A stretch of 64,000 bases of DNA from NCBI RefSeq assembly GCF_001194135.2, contig NC_068992.1:27799936-27863935 (forward strand), written 5' to 3'. Position numbers and translations under genes: made by a program. Numbering within the stretch: position 1 is the first letter of the stretch; each line of letters begins with the position of its first letter. Source of the stretch: Octopus bimaculoides (taxonomy: Eukaryota). A model generated the notes under the pieces. The model saw only the letters and a list, made by a program, of their open reading frames with translations. It was not told the origin of the DNA and searched no databases. This document shows positions 2,448 to 60,710 of this stretch, one piece after another.

Positions 2448-2480
<33 letters not shown>

Positions 2481-2983
2481 NNNNNNNNNNNNNNNNNNNN
2501 NNNNNNNNNNNNNNNNNNNNNNNNNNNNNNNNNNNNNNNNNNNNNNNNNNNNNNNNNNNNNNNNNNNNNNNNNNNNNNNNNNNNNNNNNNNNNNNNNNNN
2601 NNNNNNNNNNNNNNNNNNNNNNNNNNNNNNNNNNNNNNNNNNNNNNNNNNNNNNNNNNNNNNNNNNNNNNNNNNNNNNNNNNNNNNNNNNNNNNNNNNNN
2701 NNNNNNNNNNNNNNNNNNNNNNNNNNNNNNNNNNNNNNNNNNNNNNNNNNNNNNNNNNNNNNNNNNNNNNNNNNNNNNNNNNNNNNNNNNNNNNNNNNNN
2801 NNNNNNNNNNNNNNNNNNNNNNNNNNNNNNNNNNNNNNNNNNNNNNNNNNNNNNNNNNNNNNNNNNNNNNNNNNNNNNNNNNNNNNNNNNNNNNNNNNNN
2901 NNNNNNNNNNNNNNNNNNNNNNNNNNNNNNNNNNNNNNNNNNNNNNNNNNNNNNNNNNNNNNNNNNNNNNNNNNNNNNNNNNN

Positions 2984-3029
<46 letters not shown>

Positions 3030-6755: not shown

Positions 6756-7396
6756 CCCACTCATGCCGAAATTGTTCTGGTGAATGAAATTGCCTGAAAA
6801 TTCACAGATACTATTATTTTGGCCTAAATGACAACTGAAAAAAATTTCATTGAAATCCATTTGATACAGACTCTCTTTACTCTTTTACTTGTTTCAGTCA
6901 TTTGACTGCGGCCATGCTGGGGCACCACCTTTAGTCGAGCAAATCGACCCCTGGACTTATTCTTTGGAAGCCTAGTACTTATTCTATCGGTCTCTTTTGC
7001 CGAACCGCTAAGTTACGGGGACGTAAACACACCAGCATCGGTTGTCAAGCGAAGTTGGGGGGACAAATACAGACACACAAACATACACACACATACATAT
7101 ATATATACATATATATGACGGGCTTCTTTCAGTTTCCATCTACCAAATCCACTCACAAGGCTTTGGTTGGCCCGAGGCTATAGTAGAAGACACTTGCTCA
7201 AGGTGCCACGCAGTGGGACTGAACCGAGAACCATGTGGCTGGTAAGCAAGCTACTTACCACACAGCCTGCATACACATTAAGAACATGTTTCATTCTTTG
7301 ATACAGACCATACACAAGTCATGATTTGTATCAAGTATTTGTTTCATACCCTTATAAATTAAGTGTCAGTTTAAACAGACAATCAGCATGAATGGG
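6756..7396. mobile_element. TTAA-flanked (piggyBac-like) MITE nested in the hAT MITE
   Basis: TTAA|CCCACTCATGCCGA ... TCAGCATGAATGGG|TTAA. Confidence 0.75.
6873..7268 (-). mobile_element. Abundant tRNA-derived SINE with an internal (TA/CA)n tract
   Basis: Near full-length copy. Related pieces at 1885-2062, 4570-4745, 10625-11225, 19250-19480, 23800-23925, 30000-30280, 37450-37845, 39180-39560, 53866-54046 + 54970-55240 and 62355-62520. Confidence 0.85.
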
Positions 7397-8748: not shown

Positions 8749-10942
8749 TTATTATATTAGAAAAGAATTTCGTAGAGGCCAACTTTCTGCAGTTCATAAA
8801 ATAAGTATTAGTTGAGTGCTGGAGTTGATGTAACTGACTAGCTCCACCTCCATAAAAAAATTTTGTGGTCTTGTGACTATAGCAGAAAGGATTATTGTTG
8901 TCATAAAAGAAATCATTATCATTATCAATAAGGCGGCGAGCTGGCAGAATCATTAGCACACCGGACAAAATGCTTAGCGTCATTTCGTCTGTGTTCAAAT
9001 TCCGCCCAGGTCGAGTTTGCCTATCATTCTTCGTAATTGACTCACTTGTTCCCTAACATTGCTAGACTTGTGCCAAAACTTGAAAGTAGGAGTAGTATAG
9101 AAGGGATTTAAGAAGTAATCGTTATAAGGACAGACAACTGGAATAAGATAAAACTATAATTCATAATTGATTTCTAGTAAATTGCTGCATTTCAAATGTT
9201 AGAAAACTTAATTATTTTAAGAAATTACCCTCTCTGAAGCAAAATCTATTTTAAATCTGTCAAGGGGATAGGAGTGGGTTGTTTTGGGATTTTTTTTTCT
9301 TTAATATTTCTCTGAATCTTTAATGATTTAATACCAATATTCGTTTCATATAATTTACAACTTCAAGGGAGATAACTAGCAACAACAGTAGTTTCCCATT
9401 ATTAAATGGCAATAAAACTGTTTTAGTAAATTAATTTCTGTGTTACGGAAAATTATAGAATACTTATCAGTAATTATACAATATAAAACTAATAATATGT
9501 AGCCAACCTAGTTTAAATTTTTAAAAAAAGTCATTTATCAAGAAAAGGCATAAATTGTTATTGAAAGTCTCATTTTTTTTAAAACAAAAGTAAAAGTATA
9601 AGGAACTTGAATCTTCGTTTTAATGGCCAGCTGCAGTCTCATTTCTTTTGCATTGTTATGGCCTTTAAAAAATACTTGAAGATTACATAATCCAACCTCT
9701 ACTTTTATATTCAAAACAAAAAGAAGCGGGTTAAATTATATTATGTAAAAATCTAATTTTCTCCACTTATTAACACACGAAACATTGCACGTTTATTTAC
9801 CGAATTTACTCGTGTGCACGTCGCACTATTTTATACTTGATCTTAACTGAAAAAACTGCGGCGCTACTTATACATGGGGCAAAGCTGATTTCAAGTTTGA
9901 TGATGAAGGGAAAAAATTTTGTGCTTGGATTTACACAGTTGCTATTCTTTCGTAACTATTTTGGCCAGTTCGGTTAAGTTTGTCCTTCTTTGAAGTGGTC
10001 CAACAGTACCGAATCATATCCGGGTTTGTATCACTTACTGGAATATTGAAAATAATAGCTATTGTCTTTTCTTCCATGCATTATTCCTAATTAACTTTTT
10101 TTTAATGCTCGTTATATCTCGGGAGGGTCATTACTGCCAATAATAAACACACGCACAGGTCCTATTTCACTTCTTCCTTTTTTTTTGTCTATTAACTATT
10201 TATACCATTTAACTAACTGATTGTTTGATTACTCGTTCGGTCAATCAATCAGCTTTATCAAAATCCTTTCGTTACTAATAGCGACCCCATCAATGACATT
10301 CCTTCTCTGCTCCAAGTCTGCTTCTGGTCTGTTTCCTAGTTTACGGGTTCTATATTTATATAAATATTTTAATGCGCGCTACATTAAATATAATGGTTTC
10401 GACGATGAGCATCTGGTTGTTTGATCATCCAAAATATCTACTCACTCGTTAAATTAAGCTGGTTAGTTACCGTATCAATCCTTGATCATAATTCTCAGCT
10501 TGAATTCGCGTAACATAATATGTGACAAGGTTGGGCCTGTGAATTACAGGTGTAATCTATTTGATAAACTTCCACACAGTTTCCACGTAAGCAATTTCCT
10601 TCACAAGGTTTAGATGAAGAAACTTGATAGGAGCGGCTGTGTTGTTCAGTCCCACAGCGTGGCATCTTGGACAAGTGTCTGCTACTATAGCTTCGGGCCG
10701 ACCAGAGCCTTGTGAGTGGATTTGGTAGACGAAAACTGAAAGAAGCCCGTAGTATATATATATATATATATATATATAAAGTTGTAGTGTATTGTCAACT
10801 TAATGTGACAATCCCAATAAGGGAACACACTACTGCCGTTTAGCCCTAGGAAGCTGGACCGCTTCCTGTCGGCCTTGACACAATTACTGTGTCCTTAAGT
10901 TTGCGAGGGGGAGACAAGCTCCTCCACCCAGCCTAGCCAGCA

Positions 10943-10985: not shown

Positions 10986-12335
10986 GTAGCTTGCCATATA
11001 TATGTATGTATGTATGTATTTGTTATCTGTGTTTGTCACCTCCACCATCACTTGACAACCGGTGTTGGTGTGTTTACGTCCCCGTCACTTACCGGTTCGG
11101 CAAAAAGACACCATATAGAATAAGTACTAGGCTTACAAAGAATAAGTCCTGGGGTCAATTTGTTCGACTAAAAGGCGGTGCTCCAGCATGGCCGCAGTCA
11201 AATGAACGAAGCGCGTAAAAGAATATGCGATACTGAAATCCTGTTCCAAATTATGCCACCCTCACAGAAAGACAATTGAAACGATTCTGCCGATTGAAGT
11301 GGCAATAAATATTGATGAAGGAGCAACACTGAAAAGGAAGAAATCCTGTTGATGAGAATTAACACAATTAAAGGGAAGTTGGTGTTGGACCACATAGACG
11401 AGTCCAACACCTTACCACGAACGACCAACAGTAGTGTCTCTATGTAAGGTACATAACTCTGTTTACTCTAATTTCACTGTCTTCACAGTTGAAAAGTTGA
11501 TAGTGGAAAGAATACCTAACTGTAAATACAACTTTTCGAAAAGATAAGCGACGAGTGTTAATGTGGTCGTTAGATACGCTAGAAACAGCAGCCAGATCTC
11601 TCACAAATCACATTTTAACATTGTAGAAAACGAAAGTGACACTGGGCAATATAAAAAAAAAGATCAGCAAGCCATGCTTAAAATGCCTTTGAGGATTCCT
11701 TCATTCAATGCTAACCTGGGGTTAAATAACAACTGCTTTAACAAACAAAAAATACCCCAATACATGTAAACACGCAAAAATTAATACAAAACAATAAAAA
11801 TTGACAAATCAAAACTCAGAGTGAAGTTCACTTTTTTTTATGCTTTTTTTTTTCCACATGACTGATAATTATAAATAAAAATACTTAAAATGTTCATTTA
11901 CTTTTAATTAGAAAATTAGCTGAAGTGTACAGCATTTTTTATTAAAACTATATGACCCTCACCACTTTCAACAATGGAGATTTTGCAGGGAAGTTCTGGG
12001 TAGACCCAGTCAGTTTTTAGTGAGCGGATTCATGTGATTTATTAAATCAATATACAGTGACTGTGGCAGCATGCCATTACTATGTATTTCTTGATAAAAG
12101 AGAAGTTGATCGATCATTACCGGATTCCAGCAGTAAACATATCTATTAAATTACAGTGTTCGATAGCATAAAAGAGACATAAACATATTAGATTCAACCC
12201 ACTTTCAGCAGTATATACCTAGGAAAAAAAATTTTTTTAGTGCATTAAAACATGTATTATAGGCACAAATTTGCATATAGGACTCAGAATGATTTTTTTT
12301 TTTTTGAGACATATTTTTGGAAAGAAATGTCTTAC

Positions 12336-12780: not shown

Positions 12781-12970
12781 CTCCATCCTTACAGAGTTCA
12801 CTTTATTACCATATAGTCTTGAATTCTATCTCACAGTACAGCACCTTGAACAAGTGTTTCCTTCAGTTGCCTAGGGCCAAGCAATTCTATGTAAGTGAAA
12901 TTGACAAGCTGCATGGAAACCCATCATGTGTGTGTGTGTGTGTGTGTGTGCGTATATATATATATATATA

Positions 12971-13829
12971 NNNNNNNNNNNNNNNNNNNNNNNNNNNNNN
13001 NNNNNNNNNNNNNNNNNNNNNNNNNNNNNNNNNNNNNNNNNNNNNNNNNNNNNNNNNNNNNNNNNNNNNNNNNNNNNNNNNNNNNNNNNNNNNNNNNNNN
13101 NNNNNNNNNNNNNNNNNNNNNNNNNNNNNNNNNNNNNNNNNNNNNNNNNNNNNNNNNNNNNNNNNNNNNNNNNNNNNNNNNNNNNNNNNNNNNNNNNNNN
13201 NNNNNNNNNNNNNNNNNNNNNNNNNNNNNNNNNNNNNNNNNNNNNNNNNNNNNNNNNNNNNNNNNNNNNNNNNNNNNNNNNNNNNNNNNNNNNNNNNNNN
13301 NNNNNNNNNNNNNNNNNNNNNNNNNNNNNNNNNNNNNNNNNNNNNNNNNNNNNNNNNNNNNNNNNNNNNNNNNNNNNNNNNNNNNNNNNNNNNNNNNNNN
13401 NNNNNNNNNNNNNNNNNNNNNNNNNNNNNNNNNNNNNNNNNNNNNNNNNNNNNNNNNNNNNNNNNNNNNNNNNNNNNNNNNNNNNNNNNNNNNNNNNNNN
13501 NNNNNNNNNNNNNNNNNNNNNNNNNNNNNNNNNNNNNNNNNNNNNNNNNNNNNNNNNNNNNNNNNNNNNNNNNNNNNNNNNNNNNNNNNNNNNNNNNNNN
13601 NNNNNNNNNNNNNNNNNNNNNNNNNNNNNNNNNNNNNNNNNNNNNNNNNNNNNNNNNNNNNNNNNNNNNNNNNNNNNNNNNNNNNNNNNNNNNNNNNNNN
13701 NNNNNNNNNNNNNNNNNNNNNNNNNNNNNNNNNNNNNNNNNNNNNNNNNNNNNNNNNNNNNNNNNNNNNNNNNNNNNNNNNNNNNNNNNNNNNNNNNNNN
13801 NNNNNNNNNNNNNNNNNNNNNNNNNNNNN

Positions 13830-13830
<1 letters not shown>
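12971..13830. other. Assembly gap (largest). Other gaps at about 1542, 2481, 19760, 23928, 38725, 54260 and 58735, plus several short N runs
   Basis: N runs, mostly bordered by (TA)n; exons could be hidden in them. Confidence 0.98.
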
Positions 13831-13860
<30 letters not shown>

Positions 13861-17869: not shown

Positions 17870-18665
17870 AGCTCTCTTTTGAGTGAGTTACCACTTAGAC
17901 TGCACTATCGTAGCCTGCATGTATGGAGCACTCTCTGACCCCTACACTGTCAATTCTGGGAGTACCCCAAGTTTTGTCTTTGTCTTCTACACTCCTCCTT
18001 CTAACCTCCATCAACTCAAACAACACTCATATCCAGATGACACCACCTCTCATTCATCCCTAATTTTTTCATACCCATGCACCATCCCCATGACATATTC
18101 ACATTAATTCCATGTACAGAGACCCCAAAAACATCCTGCAAAAGGGGGACTTTGCCAATCTTAATTCCGTCAACATCTAAAAACCACAACCACTCATTAT
18201 ATCATGAAAATAATATTCCCATTTTAGGCCTCATTCACATTAAGGATCTCTCTTTTCTAAATGTACATCTTTATAAATGTACAACTTTATAAAGAAGACA
18301 TCACAATGACTGGCCCCCCTTTTAAGGCCAGAAAAAGCACCCACCCACACACAGCCAATAAACTAACACAACAAAGTTCAAATGAGACCCACAAAGTAGC
18401 ACTGCTCACTCCCATCCCTGGGATAGTGCTGCTGTTACAGCTACACGTACAGATATATTAAATGCTCACATGAAAAAAATATAAAAGGTAACTCTTCCCC
18501 CCAACCCTTTATCTACAATCCTTCTTCCCTAAATCATTGGCCCTCTGGAATGCACTTCCTGCTCATGCTTTTCCTACAGCTGTCTCTGGTCCTGGAGGTC
18601 CATTAATGGGTGATAGTCACAGCTTCTTCATATACATCAATTAAAAGCAATAAAAAACAATAAAA
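17870..18665 (+). mobile_element. Highly degenerate CR1/L2-like LINE 3' portion
   Basis: VNSG(V)PQ, HSYPDDTT (YADD relic) and SFFPKSLALWNALP motifs; A-rich tail at about 18650. Confidence 0.7.
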
Positions 18666-19739: not shown

Positions 19740-20250
19740 GTATATATATATATATATATNNNNNNNNNNNNNNNNNNNNNNNNNNNNNNNNNNNNNNNNN
19801 NNNNNNNNNNNNNNNNNNNNNNNNNNNNNNNNNNNNNNNNNNNNNNNNNNNNNNNNNNNNNNNNNNNNNNNNNNNNNNNNNNNNNNNNNNNNNNNNNNNN
19901 NNNNNNNNNNNNNNNNNNNNNNNNNNNNNNNNNNNNNNNNNNNNNNNNNNNNNNNNNNNNNNNNNNNNNNNNNNNNNNNNNNNNNNNNNNNNNNNNNNNN
20001 NNNNNNNNNNNNNNNNNNNNNNNNNNNNNNNNNNNNNNNNNNNNNNNNNNNNNNNNNNNNNNNNNNNNNNNNNNNNNNNNNNNNNNNNNNNNNNNNNNNN
20101 NNNNNNNNNNNNNNNNNNNNNNNNNNNNNNNNNNNNNNNNNNNNNNNNNNNNNNNNNNNNNNNNNNNNNNNNNNNNNNNNNNNNNNNNNNNNNNNNNNNN
20201 NNNNNNNNNNNNNNNNNNNNNNNNNNNNNNNNNNNNNNNNNNNNNNNNNN

Positions 20251-22916: not shown

Positions 22917-24531
22917 AGATTTAAATACAATTGTTATTGAACATAACATCCCTGGCAAATGATCGGCATGCTACTGGAGTCTTGCAAATAGGTCTGTTTC
23001 TCTTCTTTCAAAACTGGTGCTTATATCTTCAAATTTTACCCTAATGCCCCTAATTAGTAATTTCAGCTCTAAAGTTTGCACCTTACTGTTTATTTAAGAA
23101 CAAATTTCATTTCCCAATTTTTTTATTTCATTTATTTCATATTAACATTTGTTTGCTTTAAATAAAATATGAGTGCCACAAACACTTCTTTCAAAAAATC
23201 ATACAGAAAGATATAATGGATACCGACTGTAGTTGAACAGTTGACCAAATGGCTAAAAAATAAAAACCCAAATATTAAGGTACTAGTGGCGGGGAGTACA
23301 GGGAATAAAAATGATAATAATAATAATAATAGTAATAATGTTGAAATGAGTTTGTGGATGATTGATCACTTTGAGAGTGACAGCTGTAATGACGTCATCA
23401 CCCAGAACAGATGTGTACCAGACTGCAGACAACAGTTGTTTACACTTAAAACAACTTGTGTGTATGCATGTGTGTGTGTATTATTGTTTAACCCCCAGAT
23501 CAACCTGAATAAACTTATGATGACAGCTACAACTATTCAACCATCTGTTTCCTTTTACTTCAGGGACTACATGGTCAATATTCTTCTCATTTTACATTTT
23601 TTTTTTTTTTTTCTAAGATAGTGGAATATGATTTGAGAAAAGTTTGACAGTTATTTCTAGCAGGCTGAGTGACTCCACAGAGCAGTGTTTCTCAACCCCT
23701 TTAATATCTGGACTAGATCCAAAACCTGGATTTTTTTTAGGGGCCTGCATCAAAAAAAGTAAAACACAAGTCAACCAAACAAAAATTTATTATATTTATA
23801 GGCATGGCTGTGTGGTAAAAAACTTGCGTTCCAACCATATGGTTCCCAGTTCAGTCCCACTGCATGACACTTTGAGCAGGTGTCTTTTACTATAGCCTTG
23901 GGCCAACCAAAGCCTTGTGAGTGGATANNNNNNNNNNNNNNNNNNNNNNNNNNNNNNNNNNNNNNNNNNNNNNNNNNNNNNNNNNNNNNNNNNNNNNNNN
24001 NNNNNNNNNNNNNNNNNNNNNNNNNNNNNNNNNNNNNNNNNNNNNNNNNNNNNNNNNNNNNNNNNNNNNNNNNNNNNNNNNNNNNNNNNNNNNNNNNNNN
24101 NNNNNNNNNNNNNNNNNNNNNNNNNNNNNNNNNNNNNNNNNNNNNNNNNNNNNNNNNNNNNNNNNNNNNNNNNNNNNNNNNNNNNNNNNNNNNNNNNNNN
24201 NNNNNNNNNNNNNNNNNNNNNNNNNNNNNNNNNNNNNNNNNNNNNNNNNNNNNNNNNNNNNNNNNNNNNNNNNNNNNNNNNNNNNNNNNNNNNNNNNNNN
24301 NNNNNNNNNNNNNNNNNNNNNNNNNNNNNNNNNNNNNNNNNNNNNNNNNNNNNNNNNNNNNNNNNNNNNNNNNNNNNNNNNNNNNNNNNNNNNNNNNNNN
24401 NNNNNNNNNNNNNNNNNNNNNNNNNNNNNNNNNNNNNNNNNNNNNNNNNNNNNNNNNNNNNNNNNNNNNNNNNNNNNNNNNNNNNNNNNNNNNNNNNNNN
24501 NNNNNNNNNNNNNNNNNNNNNNNNNTGGTAT

Positions 24532-24578
<47 letters not shown>

Positions 24579-26763
24579 TTCAAATAAAGGTTACAAACTT
24601 CAATAAAGGATAATAAGATCCAATGAAAATACTGGTTAGTTACCTATTTAAAGAGTGTTGAATATTTATAATTAATAAACATATCCTTAGTTGTCACCTG
24701 GTTTTTTAACAAATATTAGATTTTTGTCTCCATAGCATGAATTTTTAAATCATTATGTAAGCATACATCAGTAAATAATTTCTTTGCTGAATTTTATAAA
24801 CAAGAGTCACAAACTCTTGTTCAATTCATTAGTTTGGGTTGCCATTGCCTGATGAGATACAATGATGCTGAAACACTGGGTGTCAGAGTCCACTAACACC
24901 AATGAATCAAGTGTGTTATGGACACATATTTGTCTTAAAGGAGTAGTTGTTCTCCAGTGAAGAAACACAACAGTGCTTAGCATATTTCTATTCAAATATG
25001 CTGGAATATATTAAAAATAAAGTCTCCAAGTCATCACGAGTATTACATTTTTTGTGAAATTGATCCTTAATTTCTTGAAATTATCTCCCCTTCCTTTTGA
25101 AGAGCTGCTAACACATTTATTTTCCTTCTTTGACTAAGAGGCAAAGTTCTGCACATTACCACATACCTCAATTATCTAAAATCATGTCATTGGCTCATTT
25201 GAATTATTTCCCTTAGCTCACTTTCTATAATAGAAATCTAGAAGTTTCTCCATCTCCAACGAGACTTTATTTTTAAGAAGATAAGCTTAGCTCTGGTCTT
25301 TATAGCAATCTTCACTGCTACTACAATATACTTTTTCATTTAATACTCAGTGTAATCAGCATTAAATGATGTCCATACACCAGTGAAGACCTCTCTGTTT
25401 ATTTGTTTTCTGCCTTTCTTGATGTATTTCTCTTCAGCCTATTTCATATCTTTCACAATAAGTAGCCAGGCTTCATGATCATGCACTATGCACTATCAAA
25501 CTCCTTACACATTCTTTTATATATATTCATTAAAATTAACCAAAATTTTAGGGAAAATTACTTTTAGAGATAAGCTTAACGATTAACTGTCTTAGAAAAT
25601 ACAAAAGTCTCACTTGGAACAAGATTTCTAGGACCATTTACACTCTTTGAAGCAAGTGACATTGAGAAGGGCATCCAGCCATACAAACCATACCAAAACT
25701 GACATTGGACCTCATCACAGCCCTACAGCTTGCCAAATCCTGTCAAATTATCCAAACTATGCCAGCAGGGAAAAATGAAGTTAAATGAAGAGCATCTACA
25801 ATCCCAAAAACTCTACAAAAGTTCCACTTAACTAGAAAAAAAAAAAAGACGATATATATTGCAGAAACAATATACATTACTCCAAAACAAATACCTAAAA
25901 CTAAACCTTAAGTATAGGCAATATATTTATTTCAAAAATAAAATATTCTAAACACAGCCTTTTAAAACATCTGCTTTATATATAGATTTCCTTTGTTGTG
26001 TGTGTGTGTATGTGTGTGTGTGTATGAATACACACATACTCACTTGCATGTGTTTGTATATACATACACAGACAGACACACACACGTGTGTGTGTCTGTC
26101 TGTCTACGTAGGTGGTTATTGTTAATGAATATATGGGAGTGACAAATGACAATGCTTCATAATCTTTTTATATTTAATCACATTTCTATTTTCTACTGTA
26201 CAAGACTGTTAAGTAATCTTGTGTTCTTCATACTATGTGCATGCACACATACATAGAGTGTGTGTGTACGTGTGTACACTGTGTGTGATAATATTGATTA
26301 CATTGTCATGCCTTTGCTCTACATAATGCTATCTGTTAATACCAACGTGTGTAAACAGAATGCACTGGACAACTGTTGCCAAGGTGATAATGAATCTCAG
26401 AAAAGATTTAAGTCACCTAATTACATTTTCAGTTATCAATTAGAATTTGGTTAATATAGAAGTTATAGTTAAAACTCAACATATTATATCATATATTACT
26501 AAACCAGAATTTCTTTTTTCACTAGCCTTCATAATTGACTAATTCTTGAAAAATTAACAACTCATTATTTTTTTTAATTTACAGAATTGGCAAGGGTCAG
26601 AAAAACAGTAAAGATAATATAGGGCTTTGACTAAAGATTAATGAAATGAGAGCTTTGATTGAATATAAATGAAGATTTATATGCTTAAAACATCAGAGAT
26701 TATGAATCACGAAAATTATTACGAGAAATTTCATTTTTTGTTCTTTTTCTCCACCTACCTCAC

Positions 26764-27428: not shown

Positions 27429-27988
27429 TATATATACAGGGTGCGATAGGTAAATTGCCACCATTTTATATTTTAAATTTTACGCATGCACATTGTTTGT
27501 TTTTGATTTTGTTGACTACACAATACAGTAGGGTCAGTTGGGCACTGTCTGTGAGAAAAACAGTACCATGACGCAGTTCACTCTGCCAGAAATTTGGAAA
27601 CGACATGCTGCATTCACATCGGAAACTCCAATACGAACATTTCAGAGTGTTTGGGTGTCGATCTAAGGACAGTGCAACCTGAGGACATGTACCGAGAATG
27701 ATAAAAATCAAACATCCAGTCAACATCATGGTGTTTGGAGTGATCACTAGTGAAGTACCTGGAGGAGGTAGTTCTGCCCTGGGTCAAGAGGGTGGCTGCT
27801 GGAAGATCCCGTATCTGGCAACAGAGATCTGCACCATGCCACACAAGCAGGAGAACCCAGTCATGGCTGTCAGACAATTTCTGTGACCACACCACCCCTA
27901 ACATCTGGCCACCTAATTCCCCAGACTGCAACCCTCTTGATTATTATGTGTGGAGTGCAGTGGAGCAAGAGACCAACAAAACTCCTTG

Positions 27989-29405
27989 CACATTGTGCCC
28001 AGGCTAGCTAATTCAGGGAAAAAATCATATCTTGGGTTAAAATAATCACCTGATAATGGTTGAGGGCTCGTTTGAACCACAATTTTAAGGACTAACAGCT
28101 GGAACCAAAATTATTTGTTTTTTTCTTTGTTTATGGGGGTCTGGGTCCAAATAACCAAATCAGGGCATATCAACCAAAATTGCCTTTTTGGTGCATTGTG
28201 GTTAACAATGATTATCTGCAAGATTTCACCAGCTTTCAATCAAGGATAACATCCATGACACTTTTAGAAGAATGTTCATCATGTCGCATCCAGCAATTGC
28301 TTCAAAACATCCCAGCCCAAGTTGTCCTGTTTGTGGTGAAGTTGGTCACACAGCTTGTTCTTTAAAACATAAGGTGTCTGCTTTGACAGAACAATCAAGA
28401 ATCAAATCCCTATATTACTGACTGGTCCATGTTACGCATATTTATTGTTTGGCATTGTTGTTTCAATATTTGTTGTGAATAATAAGCGACCAGTTTTCAC
28501 AATTTAATGCAAATGATTCTGATTTTCTTTGTGAATCAAGGGGGAGGGTGGTTCGTTGTATTTTTCCTTGTGGGGTGGGAGACTATGGTAATGTTTCAAT
28601 CCAGGGATTTGTTGGGAATATTTTCTTTTTGTTATCTCGTGTTTTGGCTCTTCTTCAATTTCAGCGTTAGCAAGGCAAAATCCTCCAAACCGGAATCTGA
28701 TCTTCCTAATCAGATTTTTACCCATAAAATAGGCTAAATACCAAAAAAAGGGTATTTAAGATCAATTATTTCAAGAAATTTATTAGGTTTTAGGTCTATT
28801 TTATGTTTCCTCTTTTTATACCTGTTTAATCACATTGGGGGTCAATAACTACCGATTTTACCCAATTTTGGTTGGTTTTGATGTTTGATACCCAAATTGG
28901 AATTTTACTTTCTGTTTGGCCTTTTAACCCCTTTGAACTGATTTTTTTTCCACAGTTTACATAAAATGTTGAGGATGTCAAATATGTTAGCCCTTAATAT
29001 GTCAAAATTTGTCATTTTTTTTTGTAAATTATCAAGTTTGAGGGGGTTTTACAAAAAATTTGGATATTTTTCATGCATCCCCTATTTTCTCAAATTTATG
29101 TTGGCCTATGTACTCAAAGCTGTTGCTTGACTGAAAGACAATAAAAATTCTTCTAAATAAGTTCAAACAGGTTAAAAATCTTTTTTGTGAAAGAAAATAT
29201 GTTCAATCATATAATACTAAAAAAAATGTAAATTTCGTTAAAATGGCCGACTTTAAAGAGCTATAAAAATTGAACCATACATTATTTTAAACTCAGGTTT
29301 TTTTGCTTTGTAATCTCTTAAGTTTAGAGAACTAGAAAATATGTATTTTAAACATCTGGAGGGAAACTTCTAAAGATGATAAATTCCCACTCTGAGCACA
29401 ATGTG
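27989..29405 (+). mobile_element. Transib/RAG-like DNA transposon relic, 1417 bp
   Basis: TIRs CACATTGTGCCCAG and (reverse complement) CACATTGTGCTCAG match 13/14. Exact 5-bp TSD CCTTG at 27984-27988 and 29406-29410. Confidence 0.75.
28135..28421 (+). pseudogene. Frameshifted RAG1L/Transib-like transposase C-terminal remnant
   Basis: GGLGPNNQIRAY (frame +1), then LSARFHQLSIKDNIHDTFRRMFIMSHPAIASKHPSPSCPVCGEVGHTAC (frame +3). Resemblance is from my recall of the family motif, not from a search. Confidence 0.55.
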
Positions 29406-31306
29406 CCTTGTAACACCAAAGATGAACTTCAAGGATTATGGCAGCATTCACCAACTTAAATAAGGAGATCGTTCAGAAGAGTTACAGGAGATTTCAAAGT
29501 TGTCTATAGGTCATGGTTGAAGCCAATGGCAATTTTGTTCAATAAATTTACTCTTTAGTATTTCAAGATATTTTTATGTAGGTAAATATAACTGTTAAAA
29601 TGAGATGTCAGTGTTATTTTCATTTTTACGTAATTTAGACAACAGTTTATTCACCACACCCTGTATATATGTAAAAGTGCAAATGTAAATGTTAACAAAT
29701 TATTGCAAATCATAGGGTATGCTTTGAGGGAGACTTGACAGCTGTTTCAAACACATCAAGCAACCAAGTAGAGCTCCTTCATTGAAATTGTTTTCACTGC
29801 TATCATAATTGTTTGACATAAATATCCACTCATGGATGTGTGGTTAAGAAGCTAGTTTTGCAAGCATGTGGTTTCAGGTTCAGTACCACTGTACAGTATC
29901 TTGAACAAGTGTCTTCTACAGTAGCTTCAGACCAACCAATGCTTCATCAGTGAAATTGGTAAATGGAAATTGTGTAGAAACTTATCATGTGCATGTCTAT
30001 GTGCATGTGTGTATGTGTGTGTGTTTTTGTGTCTGTGTATGTCACTTCTGCCTGCTATTTGACAACTGGTGTTGGTTTGTTTATATCTCTGTGACTCAGT
30101 GCTTCAGCAAAAGAGATCAATAGAATTGGCAGTACCCCAGCTCTTGAGCTGAAACTAGTAAAAAAGTAAAAGAAAAGAAAGACTTAAAAGAATAAATAAG
30201 TACTAGGGCCAATTTGTCCAACTAAACCCTTCAAGGCAGTGCCCCAGCATGGTCACAGTCCAATGACTGACACAAAGTAAGGGATACAAGATATGTGTGT
30301 CCGCCTGTGTGCGTGTGTAGAATGGACAAAACGTTATTGGTAGATGAAAAGTGTATGGAAGCACCTTGTGTGTATGTGTGTGTGTGTGCGTGCGTGTTAA
30401 CATTCCATGTCCTTGTTATCTAAGTAAAACACTGATAAGATGGTTACGCTGCTTGTTGCCATCACAACTGGTGATTCTGCACTTTCAGAAACCAGTGGAA
30501 TATGAAAAAGAAATTCCTTACTTAAAAAGCCAGGTAAGGGTTGGCTACAGGAAGAGCACCTGGCTATCAAATACTGCCTCAAATGATTCTGTGTCCAACC
30601 CATGCTAACATGGAAGAACACATGATGAACAAAAGAATGATCTCATTCTTACAGATATACCTGATAATGGTGACCAATTTATAGAACTGGTCTACCAAAA
30701 CGGATACTTTAACCCCCTGTGCATTTTAAGGAGAAGGACTTAGCTCTGACTTCAAAGCACTGAGCAAACAAGAGAAAATAATCACCTCTCAGAGTCTATT
30801 GTAAGATTAGTGCAGAAAATGATGATGATAATGGGGTACACTATTTTCAAGAGTTCACGTAAAAGCACCCACTACACTCTCGGAGTGGTTGATGTTAGGA
30901 AGGGCATCCAGCTGTAGAAACTCTGCCAAATCAGATTGGAGTCTGGTATAACCATCTGGTTCACCAGTCCTCAGTCAAATCGTCGAACCCATGCCAGCAT
31001 GGAAAGCGGACGTTAAACGATGATGATGTTGATGATGATGATGATGATGATGATGAAAAGGGCTGAAGTAATAAAAGGTACCAGAAACACATCAAAATAC
31101 CTGAAGTAAGCAAACTTTTCTCAGTTCAAATATGCTTGGGATATATTTGATCGGTAAAGAAGCATTTTCACTGTGGTTGCCATGGGAAAAAAAAATGTTT
31201 GCTTTAGGTCAAAGATGTTAAGTCCATAAAGGGATGTTCTGAAGTGAATTTGGTGTTTTTAACACCTTTTGCCAAAATCAAGAATTTTTCTCCATAGCAA
31301 ACTGCT

Positions 31307-35229: not shown

Positions 35230-36787
35230 ATCATCATCATCACCATCGTTTAACGTCCGCTTTCCATGCTGGCATGGGTTGGACGGTTTGACTGAGGACT
35301 GGTGAGCCAGATGGCTGCACCAGGCTCCAATCTGATCTGGCAGAGTTTCTACAGCTAGATGCCCTTCCCAACGCCAACCACTCCGAGAGTGTAGTGGGTG
35401 CTTTTACATGCCACCAGCACGAGGGCCAGTCAGGTGGTATTGGCAATGGCCATGCTCAAATGGTGTTTTTACGTGTCACCTGCACAAGAGCCAGTCCAGT
35501 GGCACCGGCAACGCCCTCGCTCAAATGTTGTTTTCCATGTACCACCAACACAAGTACCAATAAAGCGGTGCTTTTTACGTGCCACCAGCACGGGGGCCAG
35601 TCAGCGGCGCTGGCGACAATCACGCTCAGATGGTGCTCTTAGCACTCCACTAGCACAGATGCCTGTCATGCAGTGCTGTCATCGAATTTGATTTTGATTT
35701 CGATTTCACTTGCCTCAACAGGTCTTCACAAGCAGAGTTTAGTGTCCAATGAAAGAAAGGTATGCCTAAGTGGGCTGGTTACACCACTGGCATAGGCCAC
35801 AGGTTATGGTCACACTTAGCTTGCCGGGTCTTCTCAAGCACAGCATATTTCCAAAGGTCTCGGTCACTAGTCATTGCCTTGGTGAGGCCTAATGTTCGAA
35901 GGTCATGCTTCACCACCTCATCCCAGGTCTTCCTAGGTCTACCTCTTTCACAGTTTCCCTCAACCGCTAAGGTGTGACACTTTTTCACAGCTATCCTTAT
36001 CCATTCGTACCACATGACCATACCAGCGCAGTCGTCTATCTTACACACCACAACTGATGCTTCTTAGGTCCAACTTTTCTCTCAAGGTACTTATACTCTG
36101 TCTAGTATGCACACTAACATTACACATCCAGCAGAGCATACTGGCTTTGTTCCTTGCAAGCTTACGCATGTCTTCAGTGGTCACGGCCCATGTTTCACTG
36201 CCATGTAGCACGGCTGTTTGTACACATGCATCATACAGTCTGCCTTTTACTCTGAGCAAGAGGCCTTTTGTCACCAGTAGAGGTAGGAGCTCTCTGAACT
36301 TTGCCCAGAGTATTCTTATTCTAGCAGCTACACTTTCAGAGCACCCACCCCCACTACTAACTTGGTCACCTAGGTAATGGAAGCTATCAACTACTTGTAG
36401 TTTTTTCTCCCTGGAATGTGGTAGAAGTTGTTCTCTACACATTTTCAGTGTTTATTGCTCCTGAGCATCTGGCACATACAAAAACTATCTTCCTATTTAG
36501 CCTTCCTTTGATATTGCTGCACCTCTTATGTGTCCATAGCTTACACTGGGTACATCTTATAGAGTTTCTACCTACGCCTTTTCTACAGATCGAGCAGGGC
36601 CATCTACATGAAGGGGTTTGTGGTTTGTTTGCCTTTCTACTTATTAGGACTTTGGTTTTAGCTAAGTTGACTCTAAGGCTCTTCGATTCTAATCCTTGCT
36701 TCCACACCTGAAACTTTTCATCTGGTTCTGATAGTGACTCAGCAATTAGAGCAAGGTCATCAGCATAGAGGAGCTCCCATTGCAAAT
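35230..36787 (-). mobile_element. 5'-truncated RTE-clade LINE (RT from the YADD motif to a (GAT)n tail)
   Basis: ELLYADDLALIAES...KTKVL, VDSFHYLG, RVKGRLYDACVQTAVLHGSETW; frameshifted; 3' tail of CAT repeats on the plus strand at about 35230. Confidence 0.92.
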
Positions 36788-36889
36788 AAATATAAATAAT
36801 ATAGAAATATACTGGTTCCAAATTTTGACACCAGGCCAGCAATTTCTGAGGAGTGAGTAAGCTAATTGCATTAATCCCAGTGCACAACA

Positions 36890-37440: not shown

Positions 37441-37877
37441 TGCTCTCTTTTTTTTTTTCTTTTACTTGTTTCAGTCATTTGACTGCAGCCATACTGGAGC
37501 ACCACCTTTAGTTGAGCAAATCAACCTTGGGAATTATTCTTTGTAAGCCTAGTACTTATTCTATCAGTCTCTTTTGCCGAACCGCTAAGTGGCTGGGACG
37601 TAAACACACCAGCATTGGTTGTCAAGCAATGCAAGGAGGACAAACACACACACACACACAAACACACACATATATATATATATATATATACATATATACG
37701 ACGCTTCTTTCAGTTTCCGTCTACCAAATCCACTCACAAGGCTTTGGTTGGCCCGAGGCTACAGTAGAAGATACTTGCCCAAGATGCCATGCAGTGGGAC
37801 TGAACCCGGAACCATGTGGTTGGTAAGCAAGCTACTTACCACACTATATTAGCAGCACATCTGTCATACATCCTTAC

Positions 37878-38559: not shown

Positions 38560-39105
38560 GCATTACTACAGAATAATGCCACAATGCCCTTATATAAATA
38601 TAAACAAATAATTATATTCTTGGGAATAGAAATTTCCCCTATGAATTTTTTTACACACTGGCTTCCTGATAAAATTCTTGTAAAAGATTTTTATCCTTTT
38701 TTGAATTTATATATTTATATATATNNNNNNNNNNNNNNNNNNNNNNNNNNNNNNNNNNNNNNNNNNNNNNNNNNNNNNNNNNNNNNNNNNNNNNNNNNNN
38801 NNNNNNNNNNNNNNNNNNNNNNNNNNNNNNNNNNNNNNNNNNNNNNNNNNNNNNNNNNNNNNNNNNNNNNNNNNNNNNNNNNNNNNNNNNNNNNNNNNNN
38901 NNNNNNNNNNNNNNNNNNNNNNNNNNNNNNNNNGCAATACCTGCTCTGACAAAGTTTCTATGGCTGGATACCTTTCCAAACACCAACCACTTTGCAGAGT
39001 ATACTGGATTGCTTTGCATGGCACAGGCACCAGAGTGATCACCAAGTAACTCTCAAGATTTTTGAGCAGTAAGGAATAGCTTCAAGAATCAAAATCTTCT
39101 ACATA

Positions 39106-53308: not shown

Positions 53309-54047
53309 GTGGCTGTGCAAGTATAAATGTAATCGAAATATTTTGTTATGACATTTAATAAACTTATGTCTAGTTTCTAGTTACTGGACAAACAAAAAGA
53401 AAACTTAGGCACATCTAAGCAGTCAATCGCCTTGCAAGAAATAGCAGCCAAATTCTCTTCATAGCAATTTTTAAACAATGCACTTCAAGGTATCAGCTTA
53501 TGACAATGGTATCCCAAACACATTTCAAATTTTTTAAAATATTATTTAAGACTAAAAAGTTCATATTAATCATTGAAAAATGAATTGACCATTGTTTTTG
53601 CTAAACATAAATATACCAATAAGTCAAAGAAATTGAGAATCTCTATTTATTCTTAAATTTTACAAAGCAGAGGTTTGCTACTTAGATTACTGGTATGCTC
53701 TTCAAATTTAACAAGGAGGGCTTTATGTGACCACTGGAGCTGCTTGAAATAACAGCCTAAATATCATCAATGAGCATTTTCAAACTTGAGTGTGTATTAG
53801 AATTTCGCTTAAAGCAAGTAGAGGGTCCCATTGTCTTCATTGTTGTTTGGCCCCATTTTCAAGAGTGTGGCTGTGTGGTAAGAAGATTGCTTCCCAACCA
53901 TACTGTTCTGGATTCAATCCCACTGCGTGGCACCTTTGGCAAGTGTCTTATACTATAGCCTCAGGTCAACCAAAATCTTGTGAGTGGATTTGATAGACAG
54001 AAACTGAAAGAAGCCTGTCATCTATATATATATATATATATATATAT

Positions 54048-54970
54048 GGGAGAATATGCAAATAATAACAACAGACGAGGACAGGTGGTGTAAATAACAA
54101 AAGGATATATTAGTATGACGCTCGGGAATACGGAAAGTCTTTGACGTTTCGAGCTACGCTCTTCAACAGAAAGAATACGGAGACAAGGAGAAAACACGGA
54201 GAAAAAAAAAAAATTGAATAGTGTTCAGTCAACGGTCAATCATGTGTGTGTATATATATNNNNNNNNNNNNNNNNNNNNNNNNNNNNNNNNNNNNNNNNN
54301 NNNNNNNNNNNNNNNNNNNNNNNNNNNNNNNNNNNNNNNNNNNNNNNNNNNNNNNNNNNNNNNNNNNNNNNNNNNNNNNNNNNNNNNNNNNNNNNNNNNN
54401 NNNNNNNNNNNNNNNNNNNNNNNNNNNNNNNNNNNNNNNNNNNNNNNNNNNNNNNNNNNNNNNNNNNNNNNNNNNNNNNNNNNNNNNNNNNNNNNNNNNN
54501 NNNNNNNNNNNNNNNNNNNNNNNNNNNNNNNNNNNNNNNNNNNNNNNNNNNNNNNNNNNNNNNNNNNNNNNNNNNNNNNNNNNNNNNNNNNNNNNNNNNN
54601 NNNNNNNNNNNNNNNNNNNNNNNNNNNNNNNNNNNNNNNNNNNNNNNNNNNNNNNNNNNNNNNNNNNNNNNNNNNNNNNNNNNNNNNNNNNNNNNNNNNN
54701 NNNNNNNNNNNNNNNNNNNNNNNNNNNNNNNNNNNNNNNNNNNNNNNNNNNNNNNNNNNNNNNNNNNNNNNNNNNNNNNNNNNNNNNNNNNNNNNNNNNN
54801 NNNNNNNNNNNNNNNNNNNNNNNNNNNNNNNNNNNNNNNNNNNNNNNNNNNNNNNNNNNNNNNNTATATATATATATATATATATATGGGAGAATATGCA
54901 AATAATAACAACAGACGAGGACAGGTGGTGTAAATAACAAAAGTATATATTAGTATGACGCTCGGGAATA
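54048..54970. repeat. 83-bp direct repeats (54048-54130 and 54888-54970) flanking an N gap, within (TA)n
   Basis: Offset 840 bp, one mismatch seen. Confidence 0.8.
54138..54174 (-). ncRNA. Minimal hammerhead-like motif (A6U variant)
   Basis: UCUUU CUGUUGA A GAGC-gua-GCUC GAAA C GUC^ AAAGA. Confidence 0.55.
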
Positions 54971-55259
54971 TATATATATATATATGTATGTATGTCTATA
55001 CCTATGTGTGTGTGCATCTTTGTGACTGTGTTCCCCCCCACCATCACCGCTTGACAACCGGTGTTGGTGTGTATACGTGCCCATAACTTAGCGGTTTGGC
55101 AAAAATGACTGATAGAATAAGTACCAGGCTTTTAAAAAAGATATGTCTTGGAGTTGAGTTGTTGAACTAAAAACCCCTTCAAGGCAGTGCTCCAGCATGG
55201 TCACAGTCAACTGACTGAAACAAGTAAAAGAATAAAAGAATAAATGTGTTCGAGCCTTA

Positions 55260-58336: not shown

Positions 58337-59110
58337 TTCATTCTGAGTTACAGATTGCGTTTTGAAGATTTCCTATTTTTTCCAACAATTCTCTCTTTCA
58401 TCATTGAGAACTAGCTTTAAAATAGTATGACTATTGTTTCATCTCTTACCTAAACTTAACTAATGACATACACACATACTTGTATACACACATACATACA
58501 TACATACATACATCATCCTCATCCTCATCCTCATCATCATTATCATCATCATATACATCTCTGCAGTCTTGGAGGTTGAGCAAAGCTCATGGCTACTGCA
58601 CCCTTCAACTGAATAAACCTAAGCCATCTATTTTTAAAGAAAAAATCATTACACTCATTATCAAAATTAAATCTTTGAAGTAATATTTAAACATCTGATC
58701 TTCATAGAAAATACAGGCTAACTGACCCTCACCANNNNNNNNNNNNNNNNNNNNNNNNNNNNNNNNNNNNNNNNNNNNNNNNNNNNNNNNNNNNNNNNNN
58801 NNNNNNNNNNNNNNNNNNNNNNNNNNNNNNNNNNNNNNNNNNNNNNNNNNNNNNNNNNNNNNNNNNNNNNNNNNNNNNNNNNNNNNNNNNNNNNNNNNNN
58901 NNNNNNNNNNNNNNNNNNNNNNNNNNNNNNNNNNNNNNNNNNNNNNNNNNNNNNNNNNNNNNNNNNNNNNNNNNNNNNNNNNNNNNNNNNNNNNNNNNNN
59001 NNNNNNNNNNNNNNNNNNNNNNNNNNNNNNNNNNNNNNNNNNNNNNNNNNNNNNNNNNNNNNNNNNNNNNNNNNNNNNNNNNNNNNNNNNNNNNNNNNNN
59101 NNNNNNNNNN

Positions 59111-59414: not shown

Positions 59415-60710
59415 TAATTCCTAATGTGGATTTCAGGCTGGAATAGGCACAGCTGTCATGATTTTTGCCCTTCAGCAAGTTCAAGAAAAAGCATGTAATC
59501 AAAATATTGACTTGTACCAAGTCTTTGTCAACTTGACCAGTGAATCATTAGGCACTCTGGAAAATTTTGTCAAAAGTTGGTCATCCTGATAAAATGATAA
59601 GGGTTATAGTATCTCAGCACAAAGGAATGATGGCAACAGTGTTCAGAGGTATTTACTGTTCCCACTGGAACCAAACAGGGTCATNNNNNNNNNNTTTTTT
59701 TTTTTTTTTTTTTCCATATTTTCAACATGCTTTTAGGGATTACCATGAAAGTGTAAAATTTCAATTTTGCACAGGAGGTCTACTAAACCTAAAAGGGCAA
59801 TGTTTCAGATTAAAGAAAAAGACCAAAGAAGAGATTCTATATGACTTTCTGTCTGCTGATGATTGCATTTTGATTCCTCATGCATTTGAGGGAATTCAGG
59901 AAATAATTGACAGGTTTGCTGTGTCAGCTTCTGCATTTGAACTTACTATCAGCATCAAGAAGACTGAAGTTTTATTCCAACCAAAACATGGGGCAGAACA
60001 TATTCAAGGGTCAAATGTGATGAGTGACAACAAGCCACTCAAATGGGTCAGGTCATTTAAATATCTTGGAAAAACAATAAACGTTAAGAGTACTCGTGAT
60101 GAGGAAATCAATGTTAGAATATCTAAGGCAACAAGTGCTTTTGGAAAACTTACCCATCGTTTGTGGGATGAACATAGTGTTAGTCTGAAAACTAAAATAA
60201 GTGTATGCAAATCTTGTATTTTGAGCACACTTTTGTATGGGGTAGAAGCACGGACTCCCTACTACAAACATATAAAGAAACTTGGAACCTTTCACATGTG
60301 CTGTCTGTGCAATATCTGTAACATAAGATATCAAATAGCAAGACAAGATATCAAATGTCAAAATCTTAAAAAAAAATGTAATATCTCCAGCATCAAACAC
60401 ATGCTGCTGAGAATTCAGTGCAGATGGTTAGGATGTTGTTTGAACAAAAGATGACTACATTCCGAAAATTCTTTTGTAAGACTAATAAGCAGAGGGACAC
60501 TACAATAAGGGAAGACCTATCCCCAGACACAAAAATAAGTTGAAGTAATTGCTAAAGTCTATACAACTTGATTTGAGATCTTGAGAAAGTCATTGCCTAG
60601 ATCGATCTGCATGGTGTAAAATGTGTCATGATGCACCCAATCTGAGTTGAAGAAGCAGAGCTATAAAAGAATTATATCCTGATATCAACAGACACATTTG
60701 TCCAATTCCA
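59415..60710 (+). mobile_element. Degenerate RTE/BovB-type LINE reverse transcriptase fragment
   Basis: CGFQAGIGTAVMIFALQQVQEK, FLSADDC, TISIKKTEV, FKYLG, RISKATSAFGKL, LSTLLYG motifs. Confidence 0.9.

Follow-up and report, generated by a model that had tools for sequence, protein, structure and literature searches.

A probable internally deleted Transib transposon nested within a Tc1/mariner relic of Octopus bimaculoides

Among transposons, the closest relatives of RAG1, which is the catalytic part of the V(D)J recombinase, are the Transib transposases. Here we describe an element of 1417 bp (33% GC) that occupies positions 27989-29405 of a 64,000-nucleotide stretch of the Octopus bimaculoides genome (contig NC_068992.1, positions 27,799,936 to 27,863,935 of the forward strand), and this whole stretch is hereafter called the window. 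With a probability of about 0.92, the element represents a Transib-superfamily copy that is non-autonomous, has undergone an internal deletion, and is nested within an older relic of a Tc1/mariner transposon. This assignment rests on the homology of its ends, of a subterminal block and of a transposase tail to sequences that reside at the corresponding places in autonomous Transibs. The features of the superfamily that were found comprise transposase homology, a target-site duplication (TSD) of 5 bp, a CAC heptamer, and autonomous relatives from other data sets that carry the same termini. The element itself is a fossil, and shows that a Transib lineage made its way into an octopus-like genome. 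The element also led to intact relatives that have CACAGTG heptamers and asymmetric ends of a 12/22 type, as is described below.

A precisely bounded insertion into a mariner relic

Both ends of the element carry the heptamer CACATTG, as had been recorded in a preliminary description made from the sequence alone, and the matching of the inverted ends and the exact flanking duplication that were reported there also are borne out. The 5ʹ terminal inverted repeat (TIR), CACATTGTGCCCAG, spans positions 27989-28002 (+) with its heptamer at 27989-27995, whereas the 3ʹ TIR, whose reverse complement reads CACATTGTGCTCAG, spans positions 29392-29405 (-) with its heptamer at 29399-29405. The two repeats match at 13 of 14 positions, such that the inverted termini can be written as CACATTGTGC[C/T]CAG. 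Identical CCTTG copies of the target are located immediately outside of the element, at 27984-27988 on the left and at 29406-29410 on the right. At both ends, six of the seven heptamer nucleotides correspond to the published Transib heptamer CACAATG. Neither the 64-kb window nor 41 kb of sequence from related loci contained a second copy of the element.

The DNA surrounding the element is a decayed transposase gene, with an upstream part at 27476-27988 (+) and a downstream part at 29411-29649 (+), as judged by protein and DNA homology. The interrupted protein has 45 homologues, several of which carry the domain DDE_3 (PF13358), and on this homology the host relic can be assigned at the level of Tc1/mariner DDE_3 transposons. 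Deletion of the element together with one copy of CCTTG yields a single reading frame (...WPPNSPDCNPLDYYVWSAVEQETNKTPCNTKDEL), in agreement with the earlier proposal that excision restores the host frame. Three DDE_3 homologues (P0002, P0005 and P0013) exhibit a gapless ETNKTPCNTKDEL across the junction, and among these P0013 is from O. bimaculoides. Of the named proteins related to the host mariner, the best match is one from O. bimaculoides.

An empty site also is available at the DNA level in the form of a paralogous mariner copy, L001. Positions 10069-10305 of this locus align to window positions 27752-27988, and positions 10301-10551 align to window positions 29406-29649, such that exactly 5 bp of L001 are common to both alignments, corresponding to the duplicated target. 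Together, the protein homologues and the L001 empty site bound the insertion to the base, as 1417 bp plus a 5-bp duplication. The event is a cut-and-paste-type insertion into the mariner relic, in which the CAC ends are inverted and the stagger is 5 bp. Another assembly has a locus of equal length, in which the mariner is the only sequence in common with the window.

The precision of these boundaries bears on the possibility that no mobile element is present, and that an inverted repeat and a direct repeat were instead brought together by chance or by an assembly artefact in a mariner copy. The window does belong to a gap-rich draft assembly, and the count of TIR-like sequences is modestly above chance. 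When up to two mismatches are allowed, the 14-mer TIR occurs at two sites in 64 kb (the two termini) versus 0.34 expected, and two or more matches were obtained in 5 of 100 shuffles. It is the inverted layout at a precisely restored empty site, rather than this count, that provides strong evidence for an insertion. Given that the boundaries coincide exactly with the 5-bp overlap in L001, and that the TIRs, the subterminal block and the transposase tail are each independently homologous to Transib elements found in unrelated data sets, an origin by chance or misassembly is scarcely credible.

The transposase remnant and full-length relatives

Members of Transib differ in the length of the TSD and in the sequence of the TIRs (2026 bioRxiv preprint, 10.64898/2026.08.26.747230), and therefore a transposase gene remnant within the element outweighs the signatures at its ends. 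This remnant, located at 28212-28421 (+) and identified by profile, phmmer and tblastn searches, consists of the last 69 codons of the gene (28212-28418) plus the stop codon. It translates as LSARFHQLSIKDNIHDTFRRMFIMSHPAIASKHPSPSCPVCGEVGHTACSLKHKVSALTEQSRIKSLYY, carries a tail with a CxxCxxxGHxxC zinc motif (CPVCGEVGHTAC), and ends with SLYY directly before the stop. The translated C-terminus of a Transib locus from the ctenophore Mnemiopsis leidyi, which Tao et al. 2022 provide in their supplement, resembled this 69-codon open stretch, and the translated, stitched protein from that locus was used as a query. Seven transposases were retrieved, forming a seed set that passes the Pfam RAG1 model (PF12940) and carries RAG1_RNase_H (PF26100). 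A profile of these seven proteins matches frame +1 of the element with 17.8 bits over nodes 603-668 of 669, whereas the best of 2000 dinucleotide-preserving shuffles scored 5.0 bits. This alignment pairs the C-terminal end of the profile with that of the open reading frame (ORF) and finishes at the stop of the latter, and it is the sole match to the Transib profile within the window.

A profile search that covered all of 1.84 billion representative proteins expanded the family to 4961 members. Among the best 150 of these, P0128 (702 amino acids) aligns to the remnant with a phmmer score of 73 bits. When seven family transposases were compared with the window by tblastn, the only matching region was 28215-28415 (+), and the match always involved the last 60-70 residues. 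The best of these alignments (P0128 residues 630-698 of 702) exhibits 58% identity with an E-value of 8e-19. The catalytic core is missing from the window copy. No ORF longer than 76 amino acids was found in the element, and scans of the element with Pfam and Rfam yielded no match.

The zinc motif, which is encoded at 28320-28355 (+), differs somewhat among relatives. Its last C position is occupied by R or S in the closest relatives, P0128 and P0121, and in more distant relatives the last C appears two residues further on (CxxCxxxGHxxxxC). Either the zinc-binding tail is variable in the P0128/P0121 clade, or the final cysteine of the element is a coincidental substitution. Separately, the translation 'LWGSGSK*PNQGISTK...' upstream of the remnant was considered as decayed coding sequence for the catalytic E. 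This candidate was dropped, and the DNA in question is instead homologous to subterminal, non-coding DNA at the 5ʹ side of the relatives.

A complete relative of the element is provided by the DNA encoding P0121, a protein of 716 amino acids. A search of the PDB with P0121 gave HzTransib (6PQN) as the sole match (E 4e-15), without any RAG1 or RAG1-like (RAG1L) chain at E ≤ 1e-3, and the alignment extends into the C-terminal stretch that survives in the element. Two contigs carry this gene, and positions 1-3715 of L011 (Logan ERR10705273) are 100% identical to positions 3-3717 of L010 (ERR10705261). L011 represents a complete and apparently intact element of 3715 bp, in which a single long ORF is the only gene. 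The sequence CACAGTGCGCCCAGAA is located at base 1, and the inverted counterpart at the last base, with the termini reading CACAGTGCGCCCAGA at both ends and matching the 5ʹ end of the window element at 12 of 15 positions. Both contigs break exactly at the element termini, which is as expected for a multi-copy, possibly active element. The preliminary description had named the type of transposase encoded by full-length relatives as a test of its own assignment, and the outcome is an HzTransib-like transposase.

Related termini are present next to a second transposase, P0202, which passes PF12940. The P0202 element ends at position 3936 of contig L007 with CACAGTGTGCCCAGGG, and its 3ʹ terminus, CACAGTGTGCCCAGG, agrees with the 5ʹ end of the window element at 14 of 15 positions. 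Over 22 nucleotides, the 3ʹ ends of the window copy (CACATTGTGCTCAGAGTGGGAA) and of L011 (CACAGTGCGCCCAGAGGTGGAA) share 17 positions. The degenerate consensus CACAKTGYGCYCAGR is found at termini only, in all fetched loci. The heptamer of the relatives is the canonical CACAGTG of the recombination signal sequence (RSS), whereas that of the window copy is CACATTG.

Other contigs were inspected for the same ends. No recognizable family terminus is present in L012-L014, and a putative 3ʹ end in L006 (CACACTGGG...) was set aside because it does not resemble the terminus of the family. A scan of JGI metagenomes with the 22-nucleotide 3ʹ-TIR pattern returned eight loci, all of which lack homology to transposases, a second TIR as partner and a TSD that can be read, and among which only L016 clearly belongs to the same family as L007. 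In the JGI contigs L015, L017 and L021, CACATTGTGCCCAGGGTTGGAAAG... follows a common flank, (G)TGGG, with neither transposase homology nor a partner end nearby. These three contigs could contain an unrelated repeat with a chance 15-nucleotide terminus, or a distant family end embedded in a larger repeat.

Comparison with the relatives also locates the internal deletion that had been proposed in the preliminary description and that is borne out here. A 5ʹ subterminal block at 28130-28189 (+) was identified by blastn, in which element positions 142-201 align to positions 197-257 of L008 (77% over 61 nucleotides, E 2e-7), and the block also matches positions 144-199 of L009. Both matches reside upstream of the P0202 transposase gene and have the same orientation as in the element. 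The breakpoint falls between about 28190 and 28212, and the sequence lost relative to the relatives amounts to about 2.7 kb and includes nearly the whole transposase gene. Retained are both TIRs, approximately 200 bp of 5ʹ subterminal sequence, the last 69 codons, and approximately 1 kb of 3ʹ sequence. Most of the latter is a 3ʹ region of about 0.96 kb (28422-29377, +) that is non-coding as judged by the ORF, Pfam and Rfam scans, and that does not resemble the relatives' 3ʹ regions at the DNA level.

The DNA upstream of the P0202 gene has a further peculiarity, in that L008 183-460 and L009 1-240 contain repeated blocks, with approximately 82% identity between L008 226-454 and L009 1-236. The two loci diverge upstream of L008 position 183 and L009 position 125, and a 5ʹ terminus was not found there. 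These blocks may be subterminal tandem repeats or may reflect assembly breaks.

Having lost its transposase, the element has no capacity to move unaided. Based on the family to which it most probably belongs, a Transib transposase (a RAG1-core-like DDE enzyme) would have acted on it in trans in the past, and conceivably still could. By analogy, such an enzyme is expected to bind the ends at their CAC heptamers and at the nonamer-like motifs rich in A. Judging from the biochemistry of HzTransib and RAG, it would then nick the DNA at the heptamer border and form hairpins on the flanking DNA. After excision of the element, joining of the 3ʹ-OH ends to target positions 5 bp apart would produce the CCTTG duplication.

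The intact relatives are particularly relevant to a different origin for the element, namely as a deletion derivative of a RAG-like (RAGL) or ProtoRAG-type transposon whose ancestor carried convergent RAG1-like and RAG2-like genes. RAGL transposons likewise have CAC termini and 5-bp TSDs, a CCGHC-type C-terminal tail is known from both Transibs and RAG1L proteins, and RAGL elements are present in other molluscs. However, the sole complete relative, L011, has one long ORF in its 3715 bp and leaves no space for a RAG2-like gene, and a six-frame scan of the element gave no RAG2 Pfam signal. The ends also differ from those of RAGL elements, as the protostome RAGL TIR consensus is CACTWMCAAACKTYKBB, comprising a heptamer and an adjacent A-rich TR2 (Martin et al. 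2020). The ends of the element (CACATTGTGCCCAGG) depart from this consensus, which has AAA at positions 8-10, and element positions 4-10 read ATTGTGC rather than TWMCAAA. Furthermore, the PDB match of P0121 is to HzTransib and not to a RAG1 or RAG1L chain, and O. bimaculoides is listed among the genomes covered by Martin et al., who describe no RAGL from a cephalopod. A RAGL ancestry is therefore very unlikely. The preliminary description had combined both possibilities as a RAG-like/Transib relic, of which the Transib part is upheld by the transposase tail, by the shared subterminal sequence and by the termini of relatives, whereas the RAG-like/ProtoRAG part is not.

Superfamilies of the CMC group (CACTA/EnSpm, Mirage and Chapaev) also have CAC termini, and one such element with an atypical 5-bp TSD might be entertained given that a single insertion provides a single TSD measurement. 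CMC elements produce TSDs of 2-4 bp (bioRxiv 10.64898/2026.08.26.747230), whereas that of the element is 5 bp. In addition, the coding remnant and the relatives with matching TIRs are of the Transib type and contradict a CMC origin, which we consider to have only a negligible chance of being correct.

RSS-like ends and points of doubt

The Transib assignment gains further detail from motifs located inside the heptamers. The published Transib TIR consensus is CACAATG-N22/23-AAAAAAATC (Kapitonov & Jurka 2005, PMC1131882). In the element, a nonamer-like sequence, GAAAAAATC, is read at 28018-28026 (+), 22 nucleotides inside the 5ʹ heptamer, and this RSS23-like arrangement matches the nonamer portion of the consensus at eight of nine positions with the published spacing. 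The 5ʹ end of L011 is similarly composed of the heptamer, a 21-nucleotide spacer and the A-rich sequence GAAAAAACT. At the opposite end of the window element, a degenerate nonamer-like motif at 29378-29386 (-), whose reverse complement is GAATTTATC, is located 12 nucleotides inside the 3ʹ heptamer in an RSS12-like arrangement. The A-rich sequences at the corresponding 12-nucleotide-spacer position in relatives are GAAAAAATT in L007 and GAAACAACC in L011, and the 3ʹ motifs of the family begin with GAA after the 12-nucleotide spacer. This apparent 12/22-type asymmetry is an observation from a few, related sequences and is not a proven functional rule.

Several results weigh against the assignment of the element to Transib. 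Its end signatures, taken alone, are supporting rather than defining features, given the variation in TSD and TIR within the superfamily, and TSD length was measured at one insertion only. The 3ʹ motif GAATTTATC matches the nonamer consensus at only five of nine positions and is weak alone. The full-length relatives derive from marine metagenomes and sequencing runs rather than from the source genome, and the family terminal sequence was not seen in L006, the contig of the nearest relative, P0128. Likewise, the protein homology was not evident from all searches. When all six-frame segments of at least 30 amino acids were joined and compared with a word-indexed database of 5.8 billion proteins, no match was obtained, and the closest relative has no exact five-residue word in common with them. 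A PDB search with the ORF remnant alone returned weak zinc-finger noise (KCMF1, E about 1) and neither Transib nor RAG1. Homology emerged only once the profile search brought in closer relatives.

The remainder of the window contains features that are separate from the element. Two families of short repeats that resemble short interspersed elements (SINEs) have several copies each, located at 1896-2042, 6874-7026, 11074-11221, 37459-37603 and 55074-55236, and also at 7093-7193, 37670-37769 and 53943-54047. The two families match positions 11250-11402 and 18515-18621 of an O. bimaculoides chromosome locus (L002) at 75-91%. ORFs of 133-295 amino acids at 36041-36887 (-) and 59567-60454 (+) look by eye like reverse-transcriptase fragments of retrotransposons lacking long terminal repeats (non-LTR), and a 150-amino-acid ORF among these putative fragments includes a cysteine-rich stretch. 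Long stretches of N at 1500-1900, 2450-3000, 12960-13850, 19740-20250, 23930-24560, 38720-38940, 54260-54900 and 58730-59110 have microsatellites of the types (TG)n, (TA)n and (TATG)n on their flanks and represent assembly gaps, as is typical of a short-read draft. Rfam matches to mir-466 and mir-297 at 26000-26110 were rejected as microsatellite artefacts that do not correspond to microRNA genes.

Distribution and relation to known systems

Transibs are already known from the mollusc Aplysia, an annelid and many other animals, although autonomous copies are absent from most animal genomes and are rare where present (PMC4411706). A survey of molluscs reported a single intact Transib ORF (PMC10294476). 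No cephalopod Transib is described in the papers that were searched, and the claim that the element is the first in cephalopods is unproven. We tentatively propose, at well short of even odds, that an undescribed Transib lineage exists in octopus-like cephalopod genomes, with RSS-like ends (CACAGTG, spacers of 12 and 21-22 nucleotides, and A-rich nonamers) and with intact members such as L011 that perhaps are still active in marine animals. If true, this lineage would offer a tractable system to ask whether a Transib enzyme that operates without RAG2 already obeys the 12/23 rule. The 12/22-type architecture also bears on the debate over whether RSSs originated from Transib or from RAGL ends. 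At a more practical level, a clean and exactly bounded nested insertion of this kind can seed a family consensus for annotation.

Asymmetric TIRs of the 12/23 type have been described for a few insect Transib families (Kapitonov & Jurka 2005, PMC1131882). Transib5 of Drosophila melanogaster and Transib2_AG and TransibN1-N3_AG of Anopheles have ends in which a heptamer, a spacer and an A-rich nonamer follow one another, with a spacer of approximately 12 nucleotides at one end and of approximately 22-23 nucleotides at the other, as is observed in the window copy, L011 and L007. However, the RSS12-like end is the 5ʹ end in the insect families, whereas the window element and its relatives have the 21-22-nucleotide spacer at the 5ʹ end and the 12-nucleotide spacer at the 3ʹ end. 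The window copy also differs in that its host is an octopus rather than an insect and in that its 3ʹ nonamer has decayed.

With regard to the transposase, HzTransib of Helicoverpa zea (PDB 6PQN and related entries) is homologous to the relative P0121, and both CAC-heptamer ends and a 5-bp TSD are traits of its family. The similarity is patchy (58 bits), with a crystallised chain of 497 residues compared to the 716 amino acids of P0121, and the catalytic part has been lost from the window element. MleTransib_2823 of M. leidyi and other ctenophore Transibs (Tao et al. 2022), which were the source of the profile, have a common C-terminal layout that ends in CxxCxxxGHxxxxC. These transposases are far more distant from the remnant than P0128 is, as reflected by 17.8 bits for the profile versus 73 bits.

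The RAGL/ProtoRAG transposons of amphioxus, echinoderms, bivalves and nemerteans share with the element CAC termini, a 5-bp TSD and a transposase related to the RAG1 core, but, in contrast to what is seen here, their TIRs are of the TR2 type and they possess a gene resembling RAG2. Although it represents another lineage in another host, and although no autonomous partner of the element was seen in the part of the octopus genome that was examined, Kodama of D. melanogaster, a non-autonomous derivative of the autonomous Transib Nozomi, parallels the element in being a Transib that was likewise cut by one internal deletion, that kept both ends, that makes a 5-bp TSD, and that depends on an autonomous partner (bioRxiv 10.64898/2026.08.26.747230).

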